Origin: Setoptus koraiensis
Lineage: Eukaryota; Animalia; Arthropoda
NCBI GenBank assembly: GCA_048013815.1
Contig: CM106585.1
Span: 5,766,001 to 5,830,000 of the forward strand
Reading direction: 5' to 3'
DNA: 64,000 nucleotides
The position numbers were made by a program, and so were the translations under genes. Positions within the stretch are counted from its first letter, which is position 1. Each line of letters opens with the position of its first letter. The notes under the pieces are model-generated. The model saw only the letters and a list, made by a program, of their open reading frames with translations, had not been told where the DNA came from and made no database searches. Below are positions 9,179 to 47,870 of this stretch, one piece after another.

Positions 9179-12100
9179 AGCGCCCCATAGCGCTAGAGAT
9201 AGCGAGAGATAGACTTTGGCTGGCTGGCTGGCTGGCATAGATGCCATTTGGCCGGGGAAAGTGCATGGAAGAGCGCTATGGGTGCTCGATGCCACAGAGT
9301 CTACGGTGCACCTTGCAAAATGGAGTACGTATGCTGCCACTAAACAACTGCTAGCGGTGCAACGCGATCATGCACGCTCAGCTACCTGCACATGGCCAGT
9401 TGGCTTGCTGTCTGCGCATCTTGTGTGCATGCGCCACTCGGTCTGGCCGCCGCCGCCGCGATCTACATTGCACAATCTGCAGACTGGAGCGCGTCTGGAG
9501 TACGTAGCAGCGGCGCTGCAACAACAACAACGACGCCAACAACGACAGCAACAACGACAGCACCAGCGACAGCAGCGGCAACTTTGACAATGGTACATGC
9601 TCACCGTGAGCAGTTGTAAACTGTAAACGTTGCCCGGCTGGCTAGCTCATTGCTTTAAATTGCCCCCATTTTGTGTGATTAGTTGCGGACTGGTGTTAGC
9701 CGGAGCACCCGTTTATTCATTTTGTGTGAGTGAGTGTGTGTGTGTGCGTGTGTGTGTGTTTGGGCGGCACAGCGGTTGTACGGGGCGAATGGGCCTCTTG
9801 AGCCAATGAGTGTTTGAGTGTGTGTGTGTGTGTGTGTGTGTGTGTAACAAGCCATAACCGCCAAGCTGCACAGTGTGCGCGCCCCTGCAGAAGCGGCACA
9901 GAAATGTATACTATGCGTTGGTGAGTGTACATTAACATGTAACATTTGCGTGTCGCACACTTACGTCGCATCGTCGAGACCCCGCTCACTCGCTTTTATT
10001 GATGCTCGCTGCAGTACCGATTATCTGTTTACACTCACACACACACACACACACTCTGTGTGTGTGTTGCAGCGCTGGTGTCGCAAGTATACGCACACGG
10101 ATAATGTACGGCGGTGCGTATGGCGTTGGAACGTTGCGCAAGATAGCAGCAGATATGCAAGAATTTCTCTGGCTTTTTCTGTCTCGCTTTTCCTCGTCGG
10201 CGCCGCCGACGCCACCAATTGACTGGCTCATTGTTGTGGCTGCCCTTGCATAAATGGTGCGCCTGTCGGGGCGGCGCGGGCGCGCTCGCCAGCGCACCAT
10301 TGGGCGCAATCGCACTCAAATGGCCAGTGCACTCTAAAAAATGATACTGAACAACAATCGCGCCGATGGCATTGTCCGACCCGCACACGACGCACGACGA
10401 GCGCGTGTTTATCGGCCGCTTGCCGAGCGCTCGCCGGGCCGGCGCTCGCCGACGGCCCGCAGGAGGCTGGCTGCAGGCTGGCGAGACGGGCCAGCGGGAA
10501 AAGGCGAGCGGCACTAAATTCACACGCGCCGTGTCCAGATTATAGTTAGTGAGATGTCACGGTGTGATGTCGCCCTGGCCGCTCGGCCTTCGGGCCGTGA
10601 GTCGTGGGCCGTGAGTCGTGGGCCGTGGGCTGCTGGCTGTTGGGCGCTGGGCTGTTGGGCGCTGGGCTGTGGGCCGTGCGGCCGGTCGATAATGCGCGAC
10701 AGCACGTAACGCCGAGTATCGCCCATCGGCGGGCTGTTTGTGTATGTGGGCACGTCTTGGCGGGCCGCGCCACGGCTGGCGACCATTAAAATCCGGGCCG
10801 GGCCATAAAACGGCTGCTCAGCGAGACGCTGGCCGATTGTTTGTCAAAACAGCGCCTACCCGGGGTGACAGGGCGCACACGTTTGTGAGCAGTCGAGGGG
10901 CGCCAGACAATGCGAGGACCGATTGCGAGCCGCCTCATGAGGCTTGCGATGCGCTCATTGTGACACGGGCAATTGTCAGATTGACAATTGCCGCACACAC
11001 ACACACACACTCATTTTCGGCCCTGTCACCATCGCCATGCCCCATTGACAATTGCGAGCTTATCGGCGCTCGCTACAGCGGCTGCACAACAACACCGCGG
11101 CCGCATACGCGGGCGCATGCTCGCCGGCGCCAATGCGACAAATGATGAGCATTATCATAATATTATGTAAGCTATTATGCGACCCTGGCGGCGGCGGCGG
11201 CGGCGGAGGGGCCAGTTAGGCGATATTAGCGAGCGAGCGAACATCATTAATTGAAGAAGCAAAACACACGGCCCCTCTCACATCGGCGCGCCAGACAGCT
11301 ATCCGGTGACTTACTTTGTTAATGCGCCGTGCATGCGCCCACGCCGCATTATGCCCACCCCGGGCGCATAATGCACACACACACACACACACACCGTACA
11401 TTGTCGGCGCGCTGCATATTGTACACTGTACAGTGTTGCGGGCACGCTATTTTGGCGCCAGTATGTTATTACGGGGCACGGGGCCCCGCGCCGTTTTATC
11501 GGGCCAGCGGTGATCGACGTGCAGCGATGCCAATCATCAGCGCCGACAAAGTGAGTCGCGCCCGCCCGCCAGTCTTGGGACAAGTGCGCACCGCGGCGCC
11601 CGTACCTGTGCGCGTGCCGCGCGCCAGTTTATTTAGCCCGCTATGCCATGCCACGGCACCGAACTATGGCACTGATACTATGGCGACTGGGGCCGCCATA
11701 GTGTGGCGACGATGGCCGCCATAGTATGGCGCAGTGACTATAGCGAGGCGGCCACACTATGCTGCCAGCATACTGGCGACTGTGCACGGTGCGGCGCCCG
11801 CGGTGGGCCGGCGCGGCGCTCGGCCACTTGTCCCGCGCGCGAGCCGGCCGCGTGCACCAGCTCGCCCCGACGCTGCCCTTGCGCCGATGCCAGCGTTGCG
11901 CTTCCGTTGTGCCGATGCCAGCGTTGCGCTGGCGGCCCGCCGGCCAGCCGGCCAGCCAGTGGCGAGATGCGGCCGCCGTCATTAATATAATTGTTGTGTG
12001 TAAATTCGGTCATTATTTTGCGGCCAGCCAAGTGGGCCGGGCGCCCCTTTGCGAGCGCACCGTCGCCGGGCGGGCGCGCACAGCGGCACACAATGATTAG

Positions 12101-15100
12101 CGAGCGCGCAATGATTAGCGTGCCGCTAACTAGCTCCACCGAGCCAGCTAGTTAGGCCGGCCGTCTGCGCGCCTGGCCCGCGCAACGGCGCCCCTCGCCA
12201 GCATGCACGCCCGCCCGCCAGCATGTGCGCCCGCCTGCCAGCATGCACGCCCGCCGACGTGCACGCCCTGCGCGCGGGCTCCCCAACGAACGGCGGGCAG
12301 GCCCGTGCTCCGTTGGAGTGTCTGCTCGGCAGTGGGGACCCTCGACTCTGCCGAGTGCGCACTACAGCGCACAACTTGATAAGGGCCCGCCAGTGCTCGT
12401 TGCGTGGCGTTGCATAAAGTGGGCGGCTTGTCGGGCTGGCGAACGTGCGGGGCGTTCGTTTCGGCGCTTTTATTGCGCTCGTCGGGGCGCTCTCGTTGTG
12501 ATAACAACAACGCCGGCCGCGGCATCTCGAGCAAAGCGCGCCCGGCGTCGGTCGGGGCTCCACGGCCCAGTCAGCGCGGCCCGAGCCAGCGAGCGCCCGC
12601 CGACAACGCCGACGACGCGAGCGGCAGCTGGATAAAATAATGCTGCTGCGCTACCGTCGGCGTATCTCGCCGCGGCGGCCGCCGCGACGACAACGACGAC
12701 AACGACGACAACGACAACACTTAATTTCAATATAAAACTCGCTCGCGCGCTGTCTCTTCAACTGCAGCCATATTGAATTGAGGGCGCTTGAGTGTGTCTC
12801 GTCCGTTTGGCGAGGCCTTTTTGCAGGCGCAACACGAAACGGCATAATTGGCGCGCGTCATCGGCGGCATCTTGCCAGCGCGCCGCTGGGCCGCCGTTAG
12901 CCGGGCTGGCTCGCCGTTGGCTCGTCTCGTCAAGTTGGCCAGCCAGCGTGACTTATTAGGCTCATCCGAGGCGCTGTCGTCGCAAATTGTTTGCCTGCCA
13001 GCGCCTCTCGCTGTGACTTTGCGGCCCGCCAGCCAGCGCCGGCACAGTCGGCCGCCTGGCAGCACTGGCACAGTCGGCGGCACGACAACCGCCGCGGAAC
13101 CGTATAAACGGGCAAAAGTCGGCTAATCGTCGCCAATTCCGGCCGGGCCGCCGCCTGATTAAATGGGCTGAGCGCCAGCGCCGGGGCGCCGCCTGACGCG
13201 CGCGCTGTGAGAGCAATAGTAAAATGACGCTCTCGCCGGCCCGCGCCGGATTACCCGGCGAGTTTATTTAAATTGCCGGCCCGGTGGCACGGGGCCGCTG
13301 GCGAGCCTGCTGGCCAGCGCTCGGGCTCGCCAGCTTTCGCATGGGGCTTTGCACGGAATCTCGCTCCCGCGCGGGCTCTCGCTCTCGCGCGGCCATAGCG
13401 GGATGCGCGCGTGCCGAGCCCCACGCGATGATCGCCCATTTGCAGCCATTCCGGCGCTCGTGTGACTCACGCTGCGAGCGGCCGCAAATCATGCCCGGCC
13501 CGGCCGACCGCTCGGCACAATCAACTGGCGCGCGCGCGACGTGCTGAATATATTAGCTCGCGATAATGACACTGCACAGATGACCACAACATGCGCTCGC
13601 TCGCAACGCGCAGCGGGCCCCAACGCTCGGCAACAAATCGGCGGCGGCGGCCAGCAAAAGGCGCCCTCACATCCGCCGCCTGCCGCACAGGCCGCCGGGC
13701 CCGCTGTGGCCCGGCTGGCCGGCAACAAATCACTGCGCTGTGCGTTGTTTTTTGTCGCCGTTGTTGCGGCCGCTGCCCGGTAATTTGCCTGCCAACTGGC
13801 GATAACTGTCCCGTGCTCCGTGCACGTCGGCGGTCGTTACGCGCACTGTGCCAGCCGGCCCTGTCGTCGAGCCCGCGACCGATGTTGTTGGCCGCTCCGG
13901 AGCGGCTGCCCGCGCCAACAGCCAGCGCCAACAGCCAGCGCCTCCTTATTACCATAAGAGCGCGCGTCTTGGGCGCCCCGCAATGGTCGCATCGCGCTCT
14001 CATTATGTTGCCGACGACGCTCGCGTACAGGTGCGTCGTCGGCGGTGCGGCCAGCGCCGAGCACGTCGGGCATAACAAGCTGTTCTTGCGACGGTGCACT
14101 CGCGCCGCCCGAGCGGCTCGCTGCAACGCACAACTGCGCCCTAATTGCCATGGCCGTCCCCGCCGCCCCGTCCTCGCAGCGTGTTCCGCGCGCCGTCGCG
14201 GCCCGGCGGACGGTGCGCGGAGAGCGGCCGGCCAAGGGGGCGAGCTCGCCGTGCGCGCCTCGCAGCGATGTCCCGCGCGAAAGCGAGATTGCGAGAGCCC
14301 GCAGTAACAGTTGGCTCGGCGAGCCGCGTGGCTCGGGCGACAATCCGAGCGGCGAGCCGGAGCGGCGCACTGTCTCGTCAGCCTAGCGTCAGGCCGCGAC
14401 ACAAGCAATGGAGCCAACGGATGTGTGCACGGCGGTGTGTTTGCCAGCGTCGCGACCCATCACACCCGCTCGTGCGCTCGGACCGGCGGGCCCCAATCGC
14501 GGCCGCCTGTTGGCCTGGGCACACACACACACACACACACACATTAGGCGGCTATCACGGCAGCGCAGTTTTAGTGGCCGTTTCAGGGCACGTTCGGCTT
14601 GTTATTTATTATTTGTCTGTCCGTCATTGTTCAGTTGGCCGGGCCCCGCGACAAGTGTTTACCTCTTGTCCATTGTGTGGGGCTGGCATGATGAGGCTCG
14701 CCAAGTCGCTAATATGTGTGTTTTCGTCTCGTAGTGCTAACAGAAGTGCCAGCACCAACAACAAAAACAAACACATCCACCAATGACAGAGACACGAGGT
14801 CACGCTCGCAGCGATCGCCTCACCCGTTGAGAGGCCCGCCAGACAGCCAGACGGGCAATGTGTTTGGTAACAACACCAACAACGACAACAGCAGCAACAA
14901 CAACAACAACAACAGCGCACCTATGCGCTGGCCCCAGTCTCTTTCTGTTTCCCCCCTTCCCCCGTCTGTGTCTGGCAATGAGCGACGAGATGTCATAATC
15001 AGACTGCCCCTGCAGCACCCATAATGTGATGCGCGCCCCCCCCCCCTTCGCCCCGCCAAAAAAACAGCGCGCAACTATCACACACACCCAACTGCAGCCA

Positions 15101-16046
15101 AGTACCAGTGCACAATGCAATGAATGACGCAACGCACACACACACACACACACACACACATAAATACGGGAACGCAAGTGACAGGTGCACGAGTGGCGCC
15201 ATTTTCAAACGCGGGTCAGCCGACTCAGCTCACGACTGTCAGTCGGCCGTTGGGGCCCGCGCACAACTCGGCCGGCTGTTTGCCCGGGGCCCACAGGCGA
15301 CAAGCGACAGTTAGACACGGGAGGCCAGCCACTGCCAGACGCGGCCGACCAGCCACTGCCCGAGCCACGCAGCGGCCAAAAGTGGGCCCCGGGTAGCGGG
15401 CCCATTATTCTTTTAGCACTTGTGCAACACGCTTGCTCGCTTCAATATAAACGCAATAAACGGGGCGAGCCATTTTAGCCACTCTCACTGTCTCGTTAGC
15501 TCGCCACTAGGCTACTTGTTAGTGCCCACTGACTCGGTGAAACTCTCATCACGAAGGGGCCCCAAACGGCGGCGCCGACAAACAGTCCAGCGTTGTGTTT
15601 GTGACAACTTTTTCGGGTTGCTCAGCCCGGCCCGCACTGGCCTACCCTGGCTCACACTGGCTCGCAAGTCGCTTGGCTGAGCCGTATTTTAAAAACGACG
15701 ACCACTCTATTAATTTATGCCGCTCCTCGCCAAACACACACACACACGCACACGTATCAATCGTTGGCTGGTTATCTGGTTGGCCGATTGAGGCCAGAGT
15801 TGCGGGCCCGTTCGGCCCAGAGACACACGCGCACGCCGGACAGGTGCGCGGACAAATGGGGCCAGTTGGGGCGCCCAATGATAATGGGCCAGATATTGAC
15901 CAATTGTTGTTCGTTTGCGCACACTGTGCGCGCTGGTCACTTTGAACGGGGGGCCCCCATGGGCCCGGCTGGCTGAGTCTGTGCTCGCCAGTCTCCCGTG
16001 AGCAGCCCAGAAACAGGGCACAAATGGCCGCCATTGTGTATACACA

Positions 16047-25116: not shown

Positions 25117-27627
25117 CTAGCGAAGCTTCTTTTCTTTCATCTGATCTGTTGCGACGCTGTTTGTGTCGGCTTGGCGGCTTGTTGTTGTTGTTGTTTGTCC
25201 AATATTATCCGAAATGTTAATTGGCGCGCCACCATTTTTGCTGCTAGCAATCACTCGCGATTTTCGGCCCACGCCAAGCAGGCGCAACAGTAACGCAATG
25301 AGGGGCATCTCTAGCCAGGCCGATATCACAAATGATAGCAATTGTGTCAATATTACGATCGTGACACACTCCTTCGCAAATGTCACAAACTCCATCTTGT
25401 ACGGGTCGCTCCTGGTGTTCAATAGGTAAACTATAAGCGGACAATGAATGAGCAGGCTGGTGAGGCTCGTTTTTGAGGCCGCCTGCCAGATTGGCCACGA
25501 CAGAAAATTGGCTACTATTTGTAAGCGCCCGGTGGCCATCAGCGACAGTAAAACGGTCATCATGAGACTAAATGTGTAAGCTGAAGTGCCATAGAGCAAG
25601 GCCGGAAATAGTCGCTCGGTGAACACATTGACGGGCGTCATGGGCAGCACAGTATTTGCAAACAAGGCCACCAAAAATAGACAAAAAACATATGGATAGC
25701 GATTTGTATTGATGAGCCAATGATCGTCAAATTCCGCTTGTTTGTATCTGTAAAGAACGTGGCCGGCCATGAGGCCCATCAGATAGGGCACAACTCTAAA
25801 TTGGGGCAACGTGTACACGGTGGACAATTGATCCATGCCCAGTCTGAATGCCTCATAGTTGAAATGTATCAATGGCAACACATTGTACTGGCACCAATAC
25901 ACATATGTCACATGTGCTGCGGCCACCAACAATATGTAAACAATGATAAAATTGTAGGTTGCTTTTTGATAACGGTGCATACACCAAATGATAAACGGCG
26001 TAATAAATGCAAATTGAATGTCATTGGCCAAATACCAGCCGGGCGGCAGACAATGCTGAATGGGCGATTTGTTGTTGGCCATGACAAAAAACACCGACAT
26101 CCAGCTCTCTTGTTCGCATTCACGAACGAGGCTCCCGTTAGAGGTGCCATAGTCCCACAGAGGCCCCGAGCCGGTGTATTTAAATACCGATTTGCAGAAC
26201 CATACCACCAGGGCCCACATGGGCACTATTCTGATGTAGCGTGTTGCAATGATCATTATCCACGAGCTGGGCCGCTGGCAAAGTTTTGTCACGCCGAACT
26301 TGAATAGATTGTACGAGGTCAATATGCCGGTTATGACGAAGAAAGTGTTCACCCACAAAATAGGCGTTATGTTCCAAATAAACAATAAACTGTGCCTGAG
26401 TTCGTCTAATTCAAACATATTGCTCGATCTGGCCGTGTAATACATAAAAGCGTGACCACCAACTATGTAAAACATAATGAACGTTTTAACGCCATTCACA
26501 AACGCAAAATCTACCACTCTTGAGCTATTTCCGGTTTCCAGTGTCTCTTTTTCGTCATGGCTTTTGTCATTCGAGTTGTTCGGGTGATAATGAAACATTT
26601 TGTGACAGTTGTGCTGAATGGACAATTGTCTAATTATGTCGTCATCGATATCATCGCGCAATCCTAGCAAGGTGACAACACTGGCCAACATAACCAACGA
26701 AAGCCACAGGCTGATAAAAGTCACGAAAATACTTGCTGAAATGTTGGTCAGCCACCAGTGGCGATTCTCCGAATTGTTATCTGGCAGACAATAAATTGAA
26801 TTTAGTTCAAGGTCTTGAGTGGCATTATTCAAATTTGTTTTTGCTAACTTGGATAATAGTTGCATATTTCTGCTACTGGCGCCGCTAATGCTATCGCATG
26901 CTTCCGGTACGCACAATCCCATTTCTATGTTTGACATGTGTCTCACATCGCGATCCTTAGGAAGACAATTGGCCACTAGCAATCTGTTCCAATTGGGCGC
27001 TTTCATTTTAGCCACACAATATCTCGTCTTGACAATTTCCTCTTGTTCGTTGTCGCCAATACCATTTAATTTATTATTTGCTGCTCTCTCATTGATCACA
27101 ACAAGTCTAGAATTCAAACATTGCTCATAGTTACCTTGCCAGAAAACGTTGCCGGTGAGAAGGCCCGCTGCGGGCTTGCCATGCGAGTCCATTATGTTCA
27201 TAATTGAAAAATCTGCGCTTGTGAAAATTTTAGATTGGCCATCATTAGTTGCCCGTTGCAGCATATAGTCTAATAGCTTTGCACACCTTTCTTCATTTGA
27301 CACAGTTCTATTTATGTATAGACCAATGTTGTTTTCATCCGCATCATAATGGTGCACTGAATGCACCGGCGATACTGTTATCTTGAGCAATGCCTCAAAG
27401 TTGGCCACAAAAAATTCGTCCGATCTGAATATTGAGTTATTTTCATTTTTTTCTCTATTATTGTTGTATGTGCTTCTACTGGAATTTCGCACACTTTCGA
27501 ATGGTGGGGCGCCACATTTTTCGCGACCTCTTTGCTTCGGTAACTGGGGCAGTAGAAGTGACAAGATTGATACTATTGCGATGCAATAAATCACTATGAA
27601 AATATCTATTCTGTTAGATGGATGCAT
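25117..27627 (-). CDS. nrf-6: Nose resistant to fluoxetine-6 (NRF-6)-like protein: NRF domain plus acyltransferase-3 multipass domain
   Basis: 836-aa intronless ORF. N-terminal hydrophobic leader; NRF-domain motifs (IMDSHGKPAAGLLTGNVFWQGNYEQC, RYC, GLCVPEAC); acyltransferase-3 motifs (VNGVKTFIMFYIVGGH, VNTFFVITGIL, RYIRIVP, WYLANDIQ, YTLPQFRVVPYLMGL) with about 10 TM segments. Confidence 0.9.
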   Translation of the reverse strand: MHPSNRIDIFIVIYCIAIVSILSLLLPQLPKQRGREKCGAPPFESVRNSSRSTYNNNREKNENNSIFRSDEFFVANFEALLKITVSPVHSVHHYDADENNIGLYINRTVSNEERCAKLLDYMLQRATNDGQSKIFTSADFSIMNIMDSHGKPAAGLLTGNVFWQGNYEQCLNSRLVVINERAANNKLNGIGDNEQEEIVKTRYCVAKMKAPNWNRLLVANCLPKDRDVRHMSNIEMGLCVPEACDSISGASSRNMQLLSKLAKTNLNNATQDLELNSIYCLPDNNSENRHWWLTNISASIFVTFISLWLSLVMLASVVTLLGLRDDIDDDIIRQLSIQHNCHKMFHYHPNNSNDKSHDEKETLETGNSSRVVDFAFVNGVKTFIMFYIVGGHAFMYYTARSSNMFELDELRHSLLFIWNITPILWVNTFFVITGILTSYNLFKFGVTKLCQRPSSWIMIIATRYIRIVPMWALVVWFCKSVFKYTGSGPLWDYGTSNGSLVRECEQESWMSVFFVMANNKSPIQHCLPPGWYLANDIQFAFITPFIIWCMHRYQKATYNFIIVYILLVAAAHVTYVYWCQYNVLPLIHFNYEAFRLGMDQLSTVYTLPQFRVVPYLMGLMAGHVLYRYKQAEFDDHWLINTNRYPYVFCLFLVALFANTVLPMTPVNVFTERLFPALLYGTSAYTFSLMMTVLLSLMATGRLQIVANFLSWPIWQAASKTSLTSLLIHCPLIVYLLNTRSDPYKMEFVTFAKECVTIVILTQLLSFVISAWLEMPLIALLLRLLGVGRKSRVIASSKNGGAPINISDNIGQTTTTTSRQADTNSVATDQMKEKKLR

Positions 27628-31329: not shown

Positions 31330-32211
31330 ATGTCAAATTTGACTGATATCCCTAGCCCTTCGGGGCCGCAATCAAAAATTGGGTTTGCTTATTGGGCCGA
31401 TGAATATTGGTACAGTGTTGGCAATATTCAAATCAACAGGCACTATCCCTTGATGGCTGGTGGCCCAATGCCAGTTATTGTATTAGTTGGCCTTTATCTT
31501 TTAGCAATTCGCAAGATTGGACCGAAACTAATGGAAAATCGCCCGCCTTTTGATGTAGATGGGCCCATGAGAATTTATAATCTCCTAATGATCGTAGCAA
31601 ATGGTTATATATTTATGAGGGGACTCGTAATCACTCGATGGGGATTTGATTATTTTGGTTGCAGTGACTTGGACGTTTCGACACCGCACTCAGAAATGAT
31701 CCAATTAGGTTATTTTTACTTCACAACGAAAATTGTAGAACTATTAGATACGATTTTCTTCATCTTAAGGAAAAAATACAACCAGGCCTCATTTTTGCAC
31801 GTATTCCATCATAGTTTTATCATATTATGTTCATGGTTCTATTTCAAAATGGCCCCCGGTGGTAGCACTGTCTTGTTTCCGTTATTAAATGTTGGCATTC
31901 ATACCTTCATGTATAGCTATTATCTTTTAGCTAATTATCCAACATTAAGAAAGTTCCTCTGGTGGAAGAGATATCTAACTATGGCTCAGATAATCCAATT
32001 CGTCTTGTGCATCATACACTTTGGGTTTCATATTCTAATCTCTGAATGCAACTATCCAGCAGAATTAGCTGGCGGAGGATTTATATTCAGTATATTTTTT
32101 CTACTGATGTTTATCAATTTCTACAGAGAAGCTTATAAACATGATAAAAATCAATCAACCAAAAAAACCATGTATACTGCCGACAGTGATTGGCAAAAGA
32201 AACACTTGTAG
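31330..32211 (+). CDS. ELOVL: Elongation of very long chain fatty acids protein (ELOVL family)
   Basis: 293-aa intronless ORF with KIVELLDTIFFILRKK, the catalytic HxxHH box (FLHVFHH), HTFMYSYY, TMAQIIQF and a C-terminal KKxx ER-retrieval motif (KKHL). Confidence 0.97.
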   Translation: MSNLTDIPSPSGPQSKIGFAYWADEYWYSVGNIQINRHYPLMAGGPMPVIVLVGLYLLAIRKIGPKLMENRPPFDVDGPMRIYNLLMIVANGYIFMRGLVITRWGFDYFGCSDLDVSTPHSEMIQLGYFYFTTKIVELLDTIFFILRKKYNQASFLHVFHHSFIILCSWFYFKMAPGGSTVLFPLLNVGIHTFMYSYYLLANYPTLRKFLWWKRYLTMAQIIQFVLCIIHFGFHILISECNYPAELAGGGFIFSIFFLLMFINFYREAYKHDKNQSTKKTMYTADSDWQKKHL

Positions 32212-33312: not shown

Positions 33313-34631
33313 ATGCACAATCGTGGTGAACTCAAGAGAGATGATATCTTCACTGTTATTTCGTCTATGTTGAAAACTTTTTTGACATACCTGATTCCTA
33401 GATCAATGTATTGCAAAGATGTCTCACATGATACAGTACTTATAACTGGCGCAGGTAAAAATCTTGGTAAGGCGCTATCAGTGGAATTCGCCAAGCTGGG
33501 CTCGTCATTGGTTTTATGGGATGAGAACGAAGAAGCTCTAGAAGAGACAAAAAAACTTGTTAGTGCCGCTAGGAAGAATTCAAACAATGGCAAATTATCG
33601 GAGGATGTCTGTTTGACATATTGTGTAGATGTATCCAATTATGCAGAAGTGGTGACAGCTGCCAAACAAACAAAAATTGATTTAATGAGACAATCATGCC
33701 AACATCATTGTCAGCATGTCTCTATATTAGTGAACAATGCTAGCGTCTTATCCACCAAGACGTTCCTCGATATACATCCTAGTGCAGTAGAGAGAATTTT
33801 CCAACTGAATGTATTGGCCCATTTCTGGACGATCAAATCGTTTTTACCCGATATGATTGAACAAAAAAGGGGTCACGTCGTGGAAATAGCATCAGTGAGT
33901 GGACTTGTTAACGCAGCTAATCAGGTTTGTTATAGCGCCAGCAAGCACGCCAACGGTATGCATACATGAAAACAAACAACTTGGACAAGTTAATTTCTTT
34001 TCTTTTCCTGCTAGATCGAGCACATCTGAAAATCTCATGGATTCGTAATAACATCTCCGTTATCCCTATCTCATCGCCTTTCTCACAATTCTCATAAAGT
34101 TGGTCTAGAGTCTAGCTTGAGCTCCGAACTTTACTACCAGGGTCTGAATGAATTTATCAAGACCACATGCGTTTGCATGTCATACTTTGAGTCAGGATTG
34201 TTCACAGAATATAAACCAGTGTTAGTATCGTTTTTATTTATTAGCCAACTGATTAAATATCATTAGGTTAACTTTGCTTTTTGCTCCATCCTATATCAGC
34301 CCGTTATTGCCCCTACTCAGCCTGGAATATGTGACGCAACAAGTCATGCTGGCCATACGATGCAATGAGACACTAGCTGTTGTTCCAAAATTCTATAGCA
34401 TCTATGTTTTTTTTCTGCGGTATGTAAAATTGATGCAAAAAATTGCACATTGGTGCTCCGGCACCTACTGCTTGATATACGAAGTCCGAATTCGAACTAT
34501 AGTCGTCTAAGATATGGTTGCTTTACCTCAACTTATTCAACAGGTATCTGAATCGCGACTTCATGAATTATTTCTTGCATCAATTGATGGGCTTCGGAGA
34601 TATGACTCGTGGTATGAAGACAAATATATGA
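33313..34631 (+). CDS. Short-chain dehydrogenase/reductase, SDR16C-like (epidermal retinol dehydrogenase 2 / 17beta-HSD11/13 type), 4 exons
   Basis: Inferred exons 33313-33955, 34100-34220, about 34300-34419 and 34544-34631 (GT-AG). Motifs LITGAGKNLG, LVNNAS, NVLAHFWTIKSFLPDM, GHVVEIAS, catalytic YSASK, KTTCVC. The exon 3 acceptor is uncertain (34267 is an alternative). Confidence 0.88.
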
Positions 34632-35213: not shown

Positions 35214-36555
35214 TCACCTGGTTAATATAGACTGTTTAAAGCGGCAATGTTTATATAGCAAACAAATACCAATCACGCACTCTATAAGCAAGACAACAAC
35301 AACTACGGCTATGGTATAAAGCGCGTATTGCCACCATCTTATCACTGAAATTGAAGAGATTTCGAGAATTGGTGCCGTACCGTCTGTGGCAAAACCGCAG
35401 ATATTTTCCCCAAAAAACACTCTGGTAAATCCTATCTGGCCCCATTCAGCGCCCCAACTATTTGCTATAGTCCAATATGGCATTCCATATTCAGTGCCAT
35501 AGCCAACAACTATTACAGGGTGATTGGCATCTTCATATCCTCTAGGGCACTCTGACACATTCCAGCGGCCAACTCCGGAAAAAAACTTGCTCAACATATT
35601 GATGGCCGGATTAATGTTGACGATAAACGGCCCTCGCTTAACTAGCCAGATTTTCATTTTATTCTCATCTTGAGCTGGAAATTTCGTATAGCCATCGATT
35701 GCGTACTTTCTTGCTTCTTTTTTCATTTCACACCTCTTCGGACCATCTTTTTCTCCAACATATGGATAGCTTTCTTCGGATTGTAGACCGCCTGTATCGG
35801 TGAGAACGATTGCGAATGAATTCGAAACTTTCAGAACGGATGGAAATTTCGAAAAAAAGTTGAAAACAGTTATATATCGCTTACCTAGTCGAATCAGCTC
35901 ACTATAAGCTTGCCCAAGCAGCCTTTCCCGCTTGCATCCGTTATCCTTTGTGTCACAATCAATCAATTCTGTCATCCAATTAACGAGTTTTCATATTAGG
36001 AAAATGAGTCTCGATTATTTCAAGCTGAAACGAACGATCGTGGTAAGTGGAATTGAGGAACGCTCAAGACTTACGTTGAACTGACAAAGCAACCCTCTCG
36101 TGCCGATAAAATTTATACAAACTCTCGATGCTGCCTGTGATAGCGAATGACCAGCTTGCCCTGCATGATGATTCATCTCTGATCTTACTTATTCCATTAT
36201 ACTCATAGGACGTTGGCAACCTTTCTAGCAGTTCTTCCTCGGTGCAGTCTTCCTCTCTCAATATTTGTTTCCACAAAACATCGAAATCTATCCTACCCTT
36301 ACTACCAGCATCTTCTAATTTGTATGATCTATCGATGTAACCTCCAGTATCATTTTCGTTCAATAATTTGATGCTGACAGGACTTTTCTCGAAAACACTT
36401 CTGCGTCGCTCCCCATTGGAGCTATTGTAATTCCTTTGATAATGTTCCACAAAACTATTGGATCTGGCTGTTGCATCGGCCTGGGTGTTTGTACTCATCA
36501 CAAGATCAACCAAGTGATAAAACACAAACAAAAAGAGTTTCTGGTGTTGCATCAT
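35214..36555 (-). CDS. Papain-family (C1A, cathepsin F/L-like) protein, copy A: catalytic Cys replaced by Ser, C-terminal TM anchor
   Basis: Exons 36555-36075, 35968-35885, 35791-35214 (1143 nt, 381 codons). RDESSCRASW aligns to KNQGSCGSCW; QQLIDCD, GGLQSEESYPY, ANHPVIVVGYG and YWTIANSWG present; hydrophobic tail YALYTIAVVVVVLLIECVIGICLLY. Confidence 0.9.
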
Positions 36556-36963
36556 TGGTGATTGGTTCCACAAGGGGGCTATACACAGAAGAAAAATAGA
36601 ATAAATTACTACCAAAAATGATTACGCTATTCGTAAAAACTAAAATGAGTTATCAGTATTAAACTCTATTTGTGCGACATTCGTGGAAAGAAATTCATGA
36701 TGTCATGAAAAGAGAGACGAGATGTGAACTTTAGATTGAACAGCCTATCAGAAATATCTGTACCAATGCAATCATATATCAGATAAAGTATGAAAGGATC
36801 GTTACACATCGTCACATTATTTCTGTGATATTTTTTTCAGTCGATAATGAGTTGCTTCGTAGCCTGGAGATTTCATTCTAATTATCGACCGAAGTGTATC
36901 AAATGAATTTCCGCGAAGAGCCTTCGGTGATTCACACAAGAGAGACAACAACACGATTCACCA

Positions 36964-38195
36964 ATGATGCGACACCAGAAACTCTTTTTGTTCGCGTTTT
37001 ATCACTTAGTTGATCTTGTGGTGTGTACAAACACCCAGGCCGATGTAACAACCAGATCCAATAGTTATGTGGAACATTACCGAAGGAATTACAACAGCCT
37101 CGACAAATTAGAGGATGAGGGTAGTATAGATTTCAATGTTTTGTGGAAACAAATATTGAGAGAGGAAGACTGCACCGAGGAAGAACTGCTAGAAAGGTTG
37201 CCAACGTCCTATGAGTATAATGGAATAAGTAAGATCAGAGATGAATCAGCATGCAGGGCAAGCTGGTCATTCGCTATCACAGGCTGCATCGAGAGTTTGT
37301 ATAAATTTTATCGGCATGAAAAGGTTTCTTTGTCAGTTCAACGTAAGTCCTCAGCGTTCCTCAATTCCACTTACCACGATCATTCGTTTCAGCTTGAAAT
37401 AATCGAGACTCATTTTCCTAATATGAAAACTCGTTAATTGGGATGACAGAATTGATTGATTGTGACACAAAGGATAACGGATGCAAGCGGGAAAGGCTGC
37501 TTGGGCAAGCTTATAGTGAGCTGATTCGACTAGGTAAGCGAAATATAACTGTTTTCAAGTTTTTTTCGAAATTTCCATCCGTTCTGAAAGTTTCGAATTC
37601 ATTCGCAATCGTTCTCACCGATACAGGCGGTCTACAATCCGAAGAAAGCTATCCATATGTTGGAGAAAAAGATGGTCCGAAGAGGTGTGAAATGAAAAAA
37701 GAAGCAAGAAAGTACGCAATCGATGGCTATACGAAATTTCCAGCTCAAGATGAGAATAAAATGAAAATCTGGCTAGTTAAGCGAGGGCCGTTTATCGTCA
37801 ACATTAATCCGGCCATCAATATGTTGAGCAAGTTTTTTTCCGGAGTTGGCCGCTGGAGTGAGTCAGAGTGCTCAAGAAGATATGAGGATGCCAGTCATCC
37901 TGTAATTGTTGTCGGCTACGGAATTGAACATGCAACGCCATATTGGACTGTGGCAAATAGCTGGGGCACAGACTGGGGCGATTCAGGATTGGCCAGGGTG
38001 TTTTTCGGTGAAAATGTTTGCGGTTTTGGAACCGATGGTACGGCACCAATTCTCAAAATCTCTTCATCATCAGCGTTTAGATGGTGGCAATATGCGCTTT
38101 ATGCCACATCCGTAGTTGTTGTTGCCTTGCTTTTGGTTTGCGCGATTGGCGTCTGTGTGTTATATAAAGTTTCACAAATGAGATTACCGATTTAG
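36964..38195 (+). CDS. Papain-family (C1A) protein, copy B (inverted paralogue of copy A): Cys replaced by Ser, C-terminal TM anchor, shortened prodomain
   Basis: Exons 36964-37342, 37450-37533, 37627-38195 (1032 nt, 344 codons). Same intron positions and motifs as copy A (RDESACRASW, ASHPVIVVGYG, YWTVANSWG). Confidence 0.9.
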
Positions 38196-38868
38196 CCAGT
38201 CGGTGCTTGAATTTGGAATCCCATTTTGTTGTCGCGCTTCCGAACGGCCGTCATAAGTAACAGCGCACAGACCTGTTCGGATGTATTTATACTTGAGCCA
38301 CTCCACTGATGATTGCCTGTCTTCAGATGCCACCGAGGTTCATTATCCCGCCGAATCGATCTGTGCCGCTCCAGACGAAGCTTGGTCAACAGATGCCTGC
38401 GTTCCCTTCGAAGGGCCCCATTCTTAAAAATAAAAATAGAATTGTGCGCCGTAGAGACGAGAACAATCGAGAGAAAACAGATGCCGGTTCCTTTTTCTCT
38501 GACTCGCGAGCGACACACCACGAACTGCCATAATTAGATGTGGCTGTCGAAGAGAGTTGTCGTCGAGGAAAGGTGCCGTTGAAGAGAGTGGCAGCGAGTC
38601 GCTAAAGTGGGCAACACATAGATGGATACTGCCGAGCCTCAATGAGGCACAACTCAGAGCGCGAGCCCAGGTAGGCTCACGACGGCGAGTGCATAATATT
38701 TTGAGCCCGCCATCGTTTGTATCAAGGCTGGCGCCCAGATTTCTACGATTGCTGGCTCGTTGATCGCGCAGGAAACGATCGCTTGACAAGGGCAACAAAT
38801 TAGCGCTTCGCAAGTGACAAGACTCAGTGTTTGAGCCGGCTTTTCGGCAGGCCAACACAGTCGCAATT

Positions 38869-38986
38869 GCTGCTGTCGTTGTCGTTGCTGTCGTTGCTGT
38901 CGTTGCTGTCGTTGCTGTCGTTGCTGTCGTTGCTGTCGTTGTTGTTGTTGTTGTTATTGTTGCTGTTGTCGTTGTCGTTGTCGTCG
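38869..38986. repeat. (GTTGCTGTC)n / (GTT)n triplet-derived repeat; a related tract lies at about 39620-39698
   Basis: Seen directly. Confidence 0.9.
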
Positions 38987-40047
38987 CTAATGAACTCAAT
39001 TTGAAGCCAAAATAACCATTTGCGGGCACGCGCGCACTGATGGGCGCGTTATGAATTGTCTTTCATCAGATCGGACACATTGAGCCGTGAGAGGCACTGC
39101 CGACAGCAACAAGTGGAGCGAGCACAACGTGACGCAGCCATGGCGAACGTTGGCCAAGAATGGTGCTGGATAGACCGTTATACGTGACAAAATTGCAACA
39201 CATACAAACTGTTGCAATATACAGCCTGCATAATACAGGTGCCTGTCGCTCACCCGTGTCTGTTGGAACGGCGCTGGCGATTGTAATCGGAACGGCGAGG
39301 CCAAACGCGAGCCAAATGAGAGCCTAATGAGGGGGAGGGCGAAACATGATCAGCGTAGGTGGCCCCTGCTGTGGCCGTTAGATGCGCAGTGGCGCCGATA
39401 AGACACTGTCTGGGCACGCACAAGCTAAGCTCGACAGGGCATGACAATGCTCGAATGGACTTAATAAGACAAAATTGAAAAAACAAAAAACGTGAGCCAG
39501 TCAGAGATAACCGCTGGCTGGCTCGCTCGCTTGATGCCGATTTGCGTGGGCGATTGTCAATTTGGCAAGCCATGGCAAGTGCGAAAGTAACACACTTATC
39601 GGTCGGCGCTGCTGCTGCCGCCGTCGTTGTTGTCGTTGTTGTTGTCGTTGTTGTTGCTGTTGTTGTTGTCGTCGTTGTCGTTGCTGTCGTTGTTGTTTTG
39701 TGTGATCGTCAACCAGCCAGCAAATTACTGCTCAAATAGACTGAACGGTCGGAAGACGACAGACAGCGGCAACAAGTGTGTGTTGCCATTCTCGTACAAG
39801 GATAAAGTTATTATAAATTTATTGTTGTTGCTGGGCCTGTTCGGCGTTCGGGCGGCTGGCACACGCAACACACAATCAGCCTGCCGACAGCGACCATGAT
39901 ACGCCGCTGCCGCTGCTGCCAGTTGAGTCAGTCACCTGTCGGCGAGCAGCGCACAGGTGAGCAGTCGTTTCAAGGTGCTCGACCGATTATCATTCGAACA
40001 TTGCCGATGTGAGGTGAGAGCCCGACGAAAAACAATATTGCGCCAGC

Positions 40048-45882: not shown

Positions 45883-47870
45883 CTATACATGACCGAAAAG
45901 GTTCATCACGGGCGAGCCTAGGAAGTACCAGATCGTGAGCATCATCAGGAAGGTGACTCCTAAATCCAGATAGTACGCTCTACAGATTGATTGAGAAGTG
46001 ATAAATAGTGATTAGGATTAGCGAGACTTGTCACTGTGGCACCGGGCCGTAGGTATCAAGTATGTCTGAGAATAAGAGCTTACCTGTTGAGAGACTTGCG
46101 CGCTTGTTTCAGTGTCTTGGGGTCCTCTTTAAGAACGTAAGTTCGCGAGCCCAAAATGTAATCGTGCCAATAGCTTTCCCAGTGCATCTTTCTTATGTCC
46201 ATGTGCAGGGTTGCCTGATCCCTGGGATCGAGTTCCTTATACAATGTCATCATGTTGTTCGAATTGAAGCTCCATTCTGTGGTGCAAAAAACGTGCAATT
46301 GTTGAACGGCCGCGTGTATTTTCTCATATATGTTCATGAGAATACGCTTGTTGCCCGAGCACAAGCACAACATATCCACCAATAGGGCCGGCAAGTAATG
46401 CACAAACAATCTGGTGATAGAATCCAGGAACTTGCTGTTCTTGAACGATCCACCCGGATATCTGAGCACCTGACAGCTCGGATACTGGCGTATGATGGGC
46501 AAAAATAGGGGCTCCATGAGGCCCCACGTGATGGGGTTCAGCTTGCCGGAAGTGCAATGATAGACGGGCAGCGCTCTTGGCTTGTTGTCGCTGTTGTTGT
46601 GATGTGCGGTTGCCATGTTGTCAGTGTCGTCTGTTGTTTTGTGGTCGGCTAATTGTTCATACGAGCCGGTTGGGGTCTGTGATGTCTCTGTTGTTGTTGT
46701 GGTGGTGGTTGTTGTTGTCGCTGTGCCGCTTGGTTGTGTGGGCGCTCTTAAATTAACCGCGCCAGCCTGAGCCACCTTCCACGCGGCCGCTATCATCAGA
46801 TTGATGCAAATGTCAGCGGGTATTATGTCGGCAACGGCGTTCCGTTTCACATGCAGCGTCCTCAGCAGGCCCTTGCCGATGGCCAGCACGAGGCCCGTGG
46901 GGCCGTTCAAATTGTCCACCCAGCCGCGAATGGGGTCACGCCAAGTGGCCACAACAATGGAGGGCCGCACAATGCACACGGGCAAGTCTTGGGCCTCTTG
47001 CAGCAGCAGCAGCTCGGCCAAGGCCTTCGTGTAGGTGTAGGTGTTTGGCTTGTTGCGCAACAGCTTGGGCTTGAGCGTTTGCATGGTGTCCTCGTCCATC
47101 CATTCGGCCATCTCGATGATGCGCTTGGGCTCGTCTATCATGGGATAGACGCGTTCCTCGATGTCGCAGCCCTTGATGTCGCTGTTGGCGTAGGCGGTGG
47201 ACACGTGACACAAACTGACTAAATTGGGCAATTTGCGCGCCAGTTCTATCACGCTGCGCGCCGCTATCAAATTCAGCGCAACGGATCGTTTCAGTGGCTC
47301 GTCAAATTTGACTGTGGCAGCCGAGTGAAATATAACGCTCACATTGGCCTCTATCAACAGTTGTTCGTCCTCGGGCGAAATGCCCAAATGGGGCAACGAT
47401 ATGTCGCCCGATATAACGGACACCTTGTCAAACAGGGTGGCGTCTGTGCGCCTAATGGTGTCGAACAGTGGCGCGTTGAATATGCCATTGTTGAGGCGCT
47501 CCTGGGGCGAACAGTTGCGCTTGGTGCGCAACAACAAATAAATGTGCTCTATGCCCGTGTAACAGCGCAACAATTTCTCAAGTAGAACCTTGCCCATGAA
47601 GCCCGAGCTACCTGTTATGAATATGGATCGACCCTGGAAGAATTTCGCTATCGGCGACAACATGTCTGCACAATCGTGGAAGGCGTCGTGCTCGTCGATT
47701 GAGCTCAAATTGGCGCCCAGCGTCACCAGCGACGCCGGACTGGTTTGCGTAGCGTCCTGCTTGGCGTGTTCGGCTTGCCGGTTTGAGGTCAGATGGGGTT
47801 GCTGCTGGTACAGCTGCTGCTGCTGCTGCTGTTTTGGTTGGTACAAATGGCTGGAGGAGAGTAACTTCAT
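45883..47870 (-). CDS. FAR: Fatty acyl-CoA reductase (alcohol-forming FAR), 2 exons
   Basis: Exon 1 47870-46084, 104-bp GT-AG intron, exon 2 45979-45883 encoding the C-terminal TM (RAYYLDLGVTFLMMLTIWYFLGSPVMNLFGHV*), followed by AATAAA; 628 codons. Motifs ITGSSGFMGKVLLEKLLR, FHSAATVKFDE, HVSTAY, YTYTK, RPSIV. Confidence 0.96.

Follow-up and report, generated by a model that had tools for sequence, protein, structure and literature searches.

Organization of the divergent gene pair

The 64,000-nucleotide stretch analyzed here (hereafter the window) comes from Setoptus koraiensis and covers positions 5,766,001 to 5,830,000 of the forward strand of contig CM106585.1 (assembly GCA_048013815.1). 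At window positions 35214-38195 it contains two back-to-back, divergently transcribed three-exon genes, termed A and B, both of which encode Peptidase_C1 (papain-family) proteins that we propose to be membrane-anchored pseudoproteases. Gene A runs on the plus strand (36964-38195) and encodes 343 residues, and gene B runs on the minus strand (36555-35214) and encodes 380 residues. The gene models were built from the list of open reading frames (ORFs) and the sequence itself, with GT..AG introns placed at two codon positions; they are supported by a canonical relative on the public Logan contig L001, which has introns at the identical two codon positions. All four introns are of the GT..AG type with a length of 93-107 nt, and both reading frames are intact. 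Against the Pfam Peptidase_C1 family (PF00112, cutoff 20.7 bits), the exon 2-3 ORFs score 107.9 and 107.7 bits, and exon 1 of gene A scores 21.5 bits.

Exon 1 of gene A (37342 at its 3′ end, 36964 at its start) encodes a predicted signal peptide (residues ~1-26), a 52-residue remnant of the propeptide and the start of the C1 domain with the motif E-S-A-C-R-A-S-W. Exon 2 (37450-37533) reads L-I-D-C-D and further on a G-C-K-R-E-R loop in place of G-C-N-G-G, and exon 3 (37627-38195) supplies the remaining C1 domain, a Ser-rich linker, a predicted transmembrane (TM) helix, a nine-residue tail and the stop codon. Gene B follows the same plan on the minus strand. Its exon 1 (36075-36555) encodes a predicted signal peptide, a degenerate I29-like propeptide of ~86 residues and the C1 start with E-S-S-C-R-A-S-W; exon 2 (35885-35968) encodes a peptide identical to that of gene A; and exon 3 (35214-35791) encodes the remaining C1 domain with His279 and Asn299, the linker, a predicted TM helix and a 12-residue basic tail before the stop codon. 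Intron 2 of both genes (A, 37534-37626; B, 35792-35884) is 93 nt long, in frame and stop-free; therefore its retention would add 31 residues rather than truncate the protein.

The two start codons are separated by a spacer of 408 bp (36556-36963) that is bridged by contigs of public sequencing runs. Genes A and B form an inverted repeat that spans essentially the coding region and introns and ends ~11 bp upstream of each ATG. Because the repeat stops there, we infer that the spacer is a putative bidirectional promoter shared by the two genes.

Remodelling of the active site and decay of the propeptide

In papain-family catalysis, Cys25 and His159 form a thiolate-imidazolium pair, the side-chain amide of Gln19 lies in the oxyanion hole, and the backbone of Gly65-Gly66 provides hydrogen bonds to the substrate. 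In both genes the segment around the nucleophile reads E-S-[A/S]-C-R-A-S-W, as the first-pass annotation of this DNA had recorded, and the nucleophile is serine. Direct reading of the sequence gives the codon AGC at 37261-37263 on the plus strand (Ser100 of A) and at 36156-36154 on the minus strand (Ser134 of B), both at the papain Cys25 position. Alignment to two Cys-type relatives, the L001 gene and the mite protein P0138, defines the substitutions as Gln19 to Glu, Gly20 to Ser, Gly23 to Arg, Ser24 to Ala and Cys25 to Ser; the changes at positions 19 and 23 had already been pointed out in the first-pass annotation. The same holds for the reading GCKRE at the GCxGG loop, to which the alignment adds one inserted residue, so that G-C-[N/A]-G-G of the relatives corresponds to G-C-K-R-E-R in A and B. 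Altogether, A and B share 41 derived changes at sites where the two Cys-type relatives agree, six of which fall within the nine-residue segment N-Q-G-S-C-G-S-C-W.

The remainder of the domain has been retained. His159 (His245 in A, codon 37896-37898; His279 in B) and Asn175 (Asn265 in A, codon 37956-37958; Asn299 in B) are kept, both in exon 3, together with the NSWG core. The six cysteines of each protein occupy the same alignment columns as in the L001 gene and P0138, at the papain disulfide positions (22-63, 56-95 and 153-200), which suggests that the three bonds are formed. The Ser-His-Asn triad proposed in the first-pass annotation thus stands as a set of retained residues; a working triad is unlikely, since Gln19 and the glycine strip are gone as well.

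The 152 nearest C1 domains were aligned for comparison. The His column holds histidine in 149 of the 152 and the Asn column asparagine in all 152. Gln19 is present in 139 domains, Gly23 in 135, Gly65 in 141 and Gly66 in 142, and A and B deviate at all four positions. The combination of Glu19, Arg23, Ser25 and a charged loop at 64-66 (KRE) occurs only in A and B. Serine at the Cys25 position recurs in separate C1A lineages (P0132, P0139, P0190, P0134, P0166 and P0271). Among Ser-type proteins, the form C-x-A-S-W, with Ser24 replaced by Ala and Gly23 lost, is found in the two window genes, in cerambycid beetles and in one Logan protein, and Trichinella and some others have C-G-S-S-W; the recurring C-x-A-S-W may reflect convergent co-substitution.

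The propeptide is degraded in both genes, and to different extents. The I29 propeptide family scores 17.1 bits in gene B (E=0.0071), below the cutoff of 24.4, and Pfam gives no I29 match in gene A, where the propeptide is shorter than that of B by a further 34 residues (31+3). The ERFNAQ-type motif follows the same gradient: it is ERFNAQ-like in the L001 gene, a degenerate remnant in B and deleted in A.

Predicted signal peptide and C-terminal anchor

Signal peptides were judged by eye, and a small-residue cleavage motif follows residue ~26. At the other end, A and B carry a C-terminal extension of 45 residues, in which a hydrophobic stretch is preceded by a Ser-rich linker and followed by a basic tail. 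The TM segment was assessed by Kyte-Doolittle hydropathy, for which the maximum over 19 residues reaches 2.94 in A (~W307-Y334; 38082-38165, plus strand) and 3.23 in B (~W341-Y368; 35253-35336, minus strand), compared to at most 1.04 in the rest of the mature protein. The tails comprise nine residues with two Lys/Arg in A and 12 residues with four Lys/Arg in B. These values agree with the initial description of intact ORFs ending in a TM helix and a short basic tail, and together with the predicted signal peptide they would fit a putative type I single-pass topology. Halfway along the predicted membrane helix (35253-35336), gene B has an acidic residue, Glu359, at a position where gene A has Val; when buried in the membrane, this glutamate could mediate pairing with another membrane protein.

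Descent from a mite cathepsin-F-like protease

Among solved structures, the best match to A and B is human cathepsin F (PDB 1m6d, E=6.2e-20), followed by cathepsin K (1.2e-18) and silicatein alpha (PDB 6zq3, 2.4e-14). Neither a word-indexed search of 5.8 billion clustered proteins nor an exhaustive profile search of 1.84 billion representatives turned up an orthologue. The former yielded five weak matches with at most 34% identity, save one of 52% over 17% of the query, and the latter yielded 12,323 C1 relatives, none of them close. Across all of exon 3, the exhaustive search gave at best 48% identity (P0129), and over short stretches 54%. Look-alikes of A and B in the ESM Atlas are generic Peptidase_C1 clusters only, and the genomic context of one relative, P0130, was uninformative. 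The "lineage-specific family" of the first-pass annotation is therefore, within these libraries, a single demonstrated pair.

P0129 corresponds to the third exon of a canonical Cys-type gene on L001 that has three exons. This previously unannotated cathepsin-F-like gene (L001:3094-4474, run SRR33593474) encodes 378 residues and is the closest relative of A and B; it encodes a signal peptide and a complete I29 propeptide, carries the motifs Q-G-S-C-G-S-C-W and G-C-A-G-G, and lacks an anchor. The closest full-length named relative is P0138 (KAG9510824.1) of the eriophyoid mite Fragariocoptes setiger.

In a quick tree of 132 domains, A and B fall inside a 42-row cathepsin-F-type clade (Shimodaira-Hasegawa-like approximate likelihood ratio test, SH-aLRT, 95), which also holds CG12163-like sequences of Sycon, cathepsin F of Trichinella and sequences of Mesorhabditis. 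A mixture-model tree of 61 rows groups A with B (100/100), then with the L001 gene (99/89) and then with F. setiger P0138 (96/94). The stem branch leading to A and B measures 2.0 substitutions per site, compared to 0.32 for its sister, measured from that node, a roughly six-fold acceleration. By these comparisons and by the two shared intron positions, the pair descends from a mite cathepsin-F-like cysteine protease. In the tree, the Ser-type domains of longhorn beetles and of Trichinella (in the latter, the second, cathepsin-F-like domain) are placed away from the pair; the change from Cys to Ser in A and B is therefore an independent event. This grouping with Cys-type mite genes bears out the separate origin from other Ser-type C1A lineages that had been suggested for the pair. 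The same suggestion for the scabies mite SMIPP-Cs is probably right as well, with A and B nearest to cathepsin F-type proteins and the SMIPP-Cs, which were absent from the tree, derived from group-1 allergens according to the literature (PMC5956821).

Gene conversion and selection in the two copies

Divergence between A and B is sharply mosaic. Over 37136-37857 of gene A (plus strand), corresponding to ~35561-36281 on the B side, only 12 mismatches occur in 722 bp (98-100% identity), both introns included, and 298 consecutive base pairs are identical. Outside this tract the identity drops to ~80% over 37858-38170 and to ~90% at the 5′ end. Such a mosaic is what gene conversion of an older duplication leaves behind. 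Within the tract lie the Ser codon, Glu19, Arg23 and the GCKRE loop with its K-R-E residues; the identity of A and B at these sites is thus not independent and is silent on selection, so that the two copies lose the standing of separate witnesses that the first-pass annotation had given them. His and Asn, by contrast, fall in the diverged, unconverted part and yet are kept in A and B alike.

Selection was therefore estimated on the unconverted parts, using the Nei-Gojobori method for the ratio of nonsynonymous to synonymous substitution rates (dN/dS), gene A residue numbering and a Fisher test for synonymous excess. For residues 232-298 the ratio is 0.30 (p=0.0019), and for the whole 3′ part, residues 232-343, it is 0.39 (p=0.0008). 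The segment of linker, TM helix and tail (residues 299-343) gives 0.55; the synonymous divergence (dS) is 0.51 in all three. At the other end, residues 1-58 have a dS of 0.24 and a dN/dS of 0.43. These ratios suggest that the unconverted parts have been under purifying selection, which argues against pseudogenes.

Read support

Contigs of four public runs, X1, X2, X3 and X7 among them, were aligned to the stretch. No alternative letter, and hence no TGC, was seen at either Ser codon in any of the four runs, and one X1 contig and one X3 contig show 0 differences over 37136-37316, which includes the Ser codon of gene A. Exon 1 of B, the spacer and exon 1 of A are linked by an X3 contig (36252-37165) and, over the same positions, by overlapping contigs of X1 and X2; an assembly artefact at the head-to-head junction is ruled out by these contigs. 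The differences listed at 37382, 37542 and 37559, together with a 1-nt deletion at 37440, match the sequence of the other copy and are therefore attributed to cross-mapping between the paralogues.

Searches of the public runs for RNA evidence gave only genomic-type contigs, in which introns and spacer are covered and no splice joints occur. Two low-depth contigs of run X7 lie within exon 3 of each gene; they were rejected as evidence of transcription, since exons and untranslated regions (UTR) make up about three quarters of the stretch.

Comparison with known systems

The cathepsin F-type relatives (PDB 1m6d, KAG9510824.1 and the L001 gene) are the best matches to A and B and resemble them in the three disulfides, His and Asn and in shared blocks, among them those around K-R-G-P and at the propeptide end. 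They differ in possessing Q-G-S-C-G-S-C-W, G-C-[N/A]-G-G and a full I29 propeptide and in lacking an anchor, whereas A and B have lost all three features and gained the 45-residue extension.

Within mites, the SMIPP-Cs of Sarcoptes scabiei are gut-expressed pseudoproteases with a mutated catalytic site and oxyanion Gln; they are closest to group-1 allergens (PMC5956821) and are thought to have new, non-proteolytic roles (PMC5956821, PMC7815109). A and B, also C1A paralogues from a mite, show the same two kinds of change. However, the SMIPP-Cs are soluble gut or secreted proteins, present in multiple copies in an animal parasite and of group-1 allergen origin, whereas A and B are a single pair of cathepsin F origin with a predicted membrane anchor.

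Several Ser-type proteins retain His and Asn, as do A and B, namely Plasmodium SERA5, silicatein alpha, Trichinella P0134 and the beetle proteins P0132 and P0139. SERA5 reportedly acts non-enzymatically (PMC4671257). The cathepsin-L-like proteins of cerambycid beetles further share C-x-A-S-W with A and B. In the alignment, however, the Trichinella and beetle domains have an intact Gly65-Gly66, lack the combination of Glu19, Arg23 and charged loop, and have no C-terminal hydrophobic anchor.

Anchored members of the family are also known, so that the premise of normally soluble C1A proteases, from which the first-pass annotation started, has exceptions. Members of the Entamoeba histolytica EhCP-B group are annotated with a C-terminal TM or glycosylphosphatidylinositol (GPI) signal (PMC1913524). 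As is predicted for A and B, the EhCP-B proteins and two proteins of Steinernema hermaphroditum (P0248 and P0239) combine a signal peptide, a C1 domain and a C-terminal anchor, in the Steinernema proteins a TM helix, but they retain the catalytic Cys, are presumed active, and have anchors unrelated in sequence to the extension of A and B. The two Steinernema proteins, annotated as hypothetical, have a common cytoplasmic tail ending in F-E-N-x-x-N-F-[RK]-[VA], an ending that resembles a sorting signal of the NPxF type.

A possible working analogy for A and B as dead C1A paralogues is TrCB1.6 of Trichobilharzia regenti, a highly expressed, dead cathepsin B paralogue that binds cystatin, suggesting inhibitor sequestration (PMC7054455). 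TrCB1.6 carries a Cys-to-Gly change, is soluble and has binding pockets described as apparently intact (PMC7054455), whereas the groove of A and B is remodelled; canonical cystatin binding is thus doubtful for them, and a decoy role is less likely than for TrCB1.6.

The literature yielded no general treatment of C-terminally anchored C1A proteins and no earlier case in which a C1A domain of cathepsin F origin, dead and with a remodelled groove, carries a C-terminal membrane anchor. Ser-type pseudoproteases and anchored C1A proteins are each known already, so the pairing of a Ser-type active site with an anchor is less exceptional than it had been taken to be at first; new is the combination on a cathepsin F background, in one species.

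A proposed non-proteolytic role and its alternatives

On balance we favour, as the probable explanation, that A and B are functional, non-proteolytic, type I membrane-anchored pseudoproteases that serve as binding or scaffold modules and were derived from cathepsin F. The Ser nucleophile, Glu19, the charged glycine strip, the decayed propeptide, the surviving fold and the purifying selection lead to this reading when taken together, and the pseudoprotease character originally suggested for the pair is upheld to the extent that A and B, with a remodelled cleft and a predicted anchor, are very likely not cysteine proteases. In the proposed mechanism, the signal peptide would bring the papain-fold domain into the lumen of the endoplasmic reticulum and the secretory pathway, and the C-terminal helix with its Lys/Arg residues would stop transfer, leaving the domain luminal or extracellular and 9-12 residues in the cytosol. 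The fold persists, as seen in the cysteines of the three disulfides and in His159, Asn175 and the NSWG core. Catalytic residues and peptide-binding strip would have been dismantled by Ser at the nucleophile, by a carboxylate at the oxyanion residue and by the exchange of glycines for long charged side chains plus an insertion, and decay of the inhibitory propeptide would fit the absence of an activity to restrain. Tethered to the membrane and with its groove recharged, the domain would then most likely serve for binding or as a scaffold. Both the lack of proteolysis and the binding role are deduced from sequence features. Neither of the two placements initially suggested for such a module, the cell surface and the lysosomal membrane, is favoured by the analysis, and the host-interface role suggested along with them is unsupported.

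Several points weigh against the proposal. There is neither transcript nor protein evidence, and the runs behave as genomic DNA; without an orthologue, long-term conservation cannot be shown; the retention of the active-site changes in both copies is not independent, owing to the conversion tract; dN/dS values of 0.3-0.55 are relaxed relative to typical enzymes; and for some Cys-to-Ser C1A proteins found in nature a degree of retained activity has been claimed (PMC7054455). The first two of these points, together with the very long stem branch, the propeptide deletions and a dN/dS that is not very low, would also suit non-functional or dying inverted duplicates that drift and whose frames stay open only through youth and gene conversion. 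We regard this as unlikely. The unconverted 3′ part has a dS of ~0.5 and yet the frames and all four splice-site pairs are intact, the dN/dS there lies significantly below 1 rather than near it (0.30-0.39, p about 0.001), and the six Cys, His, Asn and NSWG have been kept after ~2 substitutions per site, which neutral decay would not have preserved. A similarly small chance is given to the extension being a GPI-attachment signal, with an omega site in the S-S-S-S linker, instead of a TM helix, an alternative that would keep the domain on the outer leaflet and leave the proposed class of function unchanged. A Ser-rich run of small residues does lie ~10 residues ahead of the hydrophobic stretch, and the alternate TM or GPI annotation of EhCP-B members (PMC1913524) offers a precedent; however, the hydrophobic core of ~24-28 residues is long for a GPI signal, and a tail of 9-12 residues with two to four basic ones is typical of a stop-transfer anchor.

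Slightly less probable still are active hydrolases of altered chemistry, in which a silicatein-like Ser-His-Asn triad at the membrane surface would turn over a non-peptide or unusual substrate. All three residues are kept, His and Asn independently in the diverged part; further Ser-type C1A lineages also show Ser24 to Ala together with Cys25 to Ser (A-S-W), a recurrence that hints at a selected configuration; and silicatein alpha is among the solved homologues (PDB 6zq3, E=2.4e-14). Yet the oxyanion Gln19 has become Glu, and Gly23 and Gly65/66 have been replaced by charged residues. His and Asn, moreover, are structurally embedded as well and are retained in many dead homologues, and the propeptide is decaying, although an active enzyme would be expected to need one for folding and latency. 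Most doubtful is the fuller scenario in which the pair has acquired a new activity or ligand, be it as a receptor or decoy on the gut or salivary surface of a gall or rust mite, directed at plant defence proteins such as phytocystatins, or as a Ser-His-Asn non-peptide hydrolase, with an anchor born from the 3′ UTR by loss of a stop codon. Of its variants, the cystatin-decoy role was downgraded in view of the replaced groove residues.

Genomic neighbourhood

The pair is flanked by lipid-metabolism genes, encoding an NRF-domain acyltransferase, an ELO fatty-acid elongase, a short-chain dehydrogenase and a fatty acyl-CoA reductase (window positions 25117-27627, 31330-32211, 33313-33969 and 46080-47870). 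They may represent a cuticular-lipid neighbourhood or a coincidence. A DHX33-type helicase in the window has its best named match in the eriophyoid mite Aceria tosichella (52% identity), followed by other mites and ticks. Together with the F. setiger relative of the C1 genes, these matches place the source of the DNA probably among eriophyoid mites. Just downstream of gene A, at 38827-39015 and 39542-39739, long GTN/ACN-type triplet runs read as poly-Val/Ala or poly-Thr/Ala depending on the strand and are probably microsatellite-like low-complexity DNA. The G+C content is 61-67% at 10001-16000 of the window, compared to 36-43% around the pair.

Implications

Dead papain-family paralogues have repeatedly been recruited to non-proteolytic jobs in parasites, as in the SMIPP-Cs, SERA5 and TrCB1.6, and the pair adds to this series a cathepsin F case, from what is probably a minute mite that feeds on plants. 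One locus combines loss of the nucleophile, the oxyanion hole and the glycine strip with decay of the propeptide and gain of a predicted anchor. At the present level of evidence the pair remains a lineage-specific curiosity. Eriophyoid mites are crop pests, and a role in feeding, if true, would therefore be of applied interest. More broadly, the pair could exemplify how a lysosomal protease fold turns into a membrane receptor-like module.

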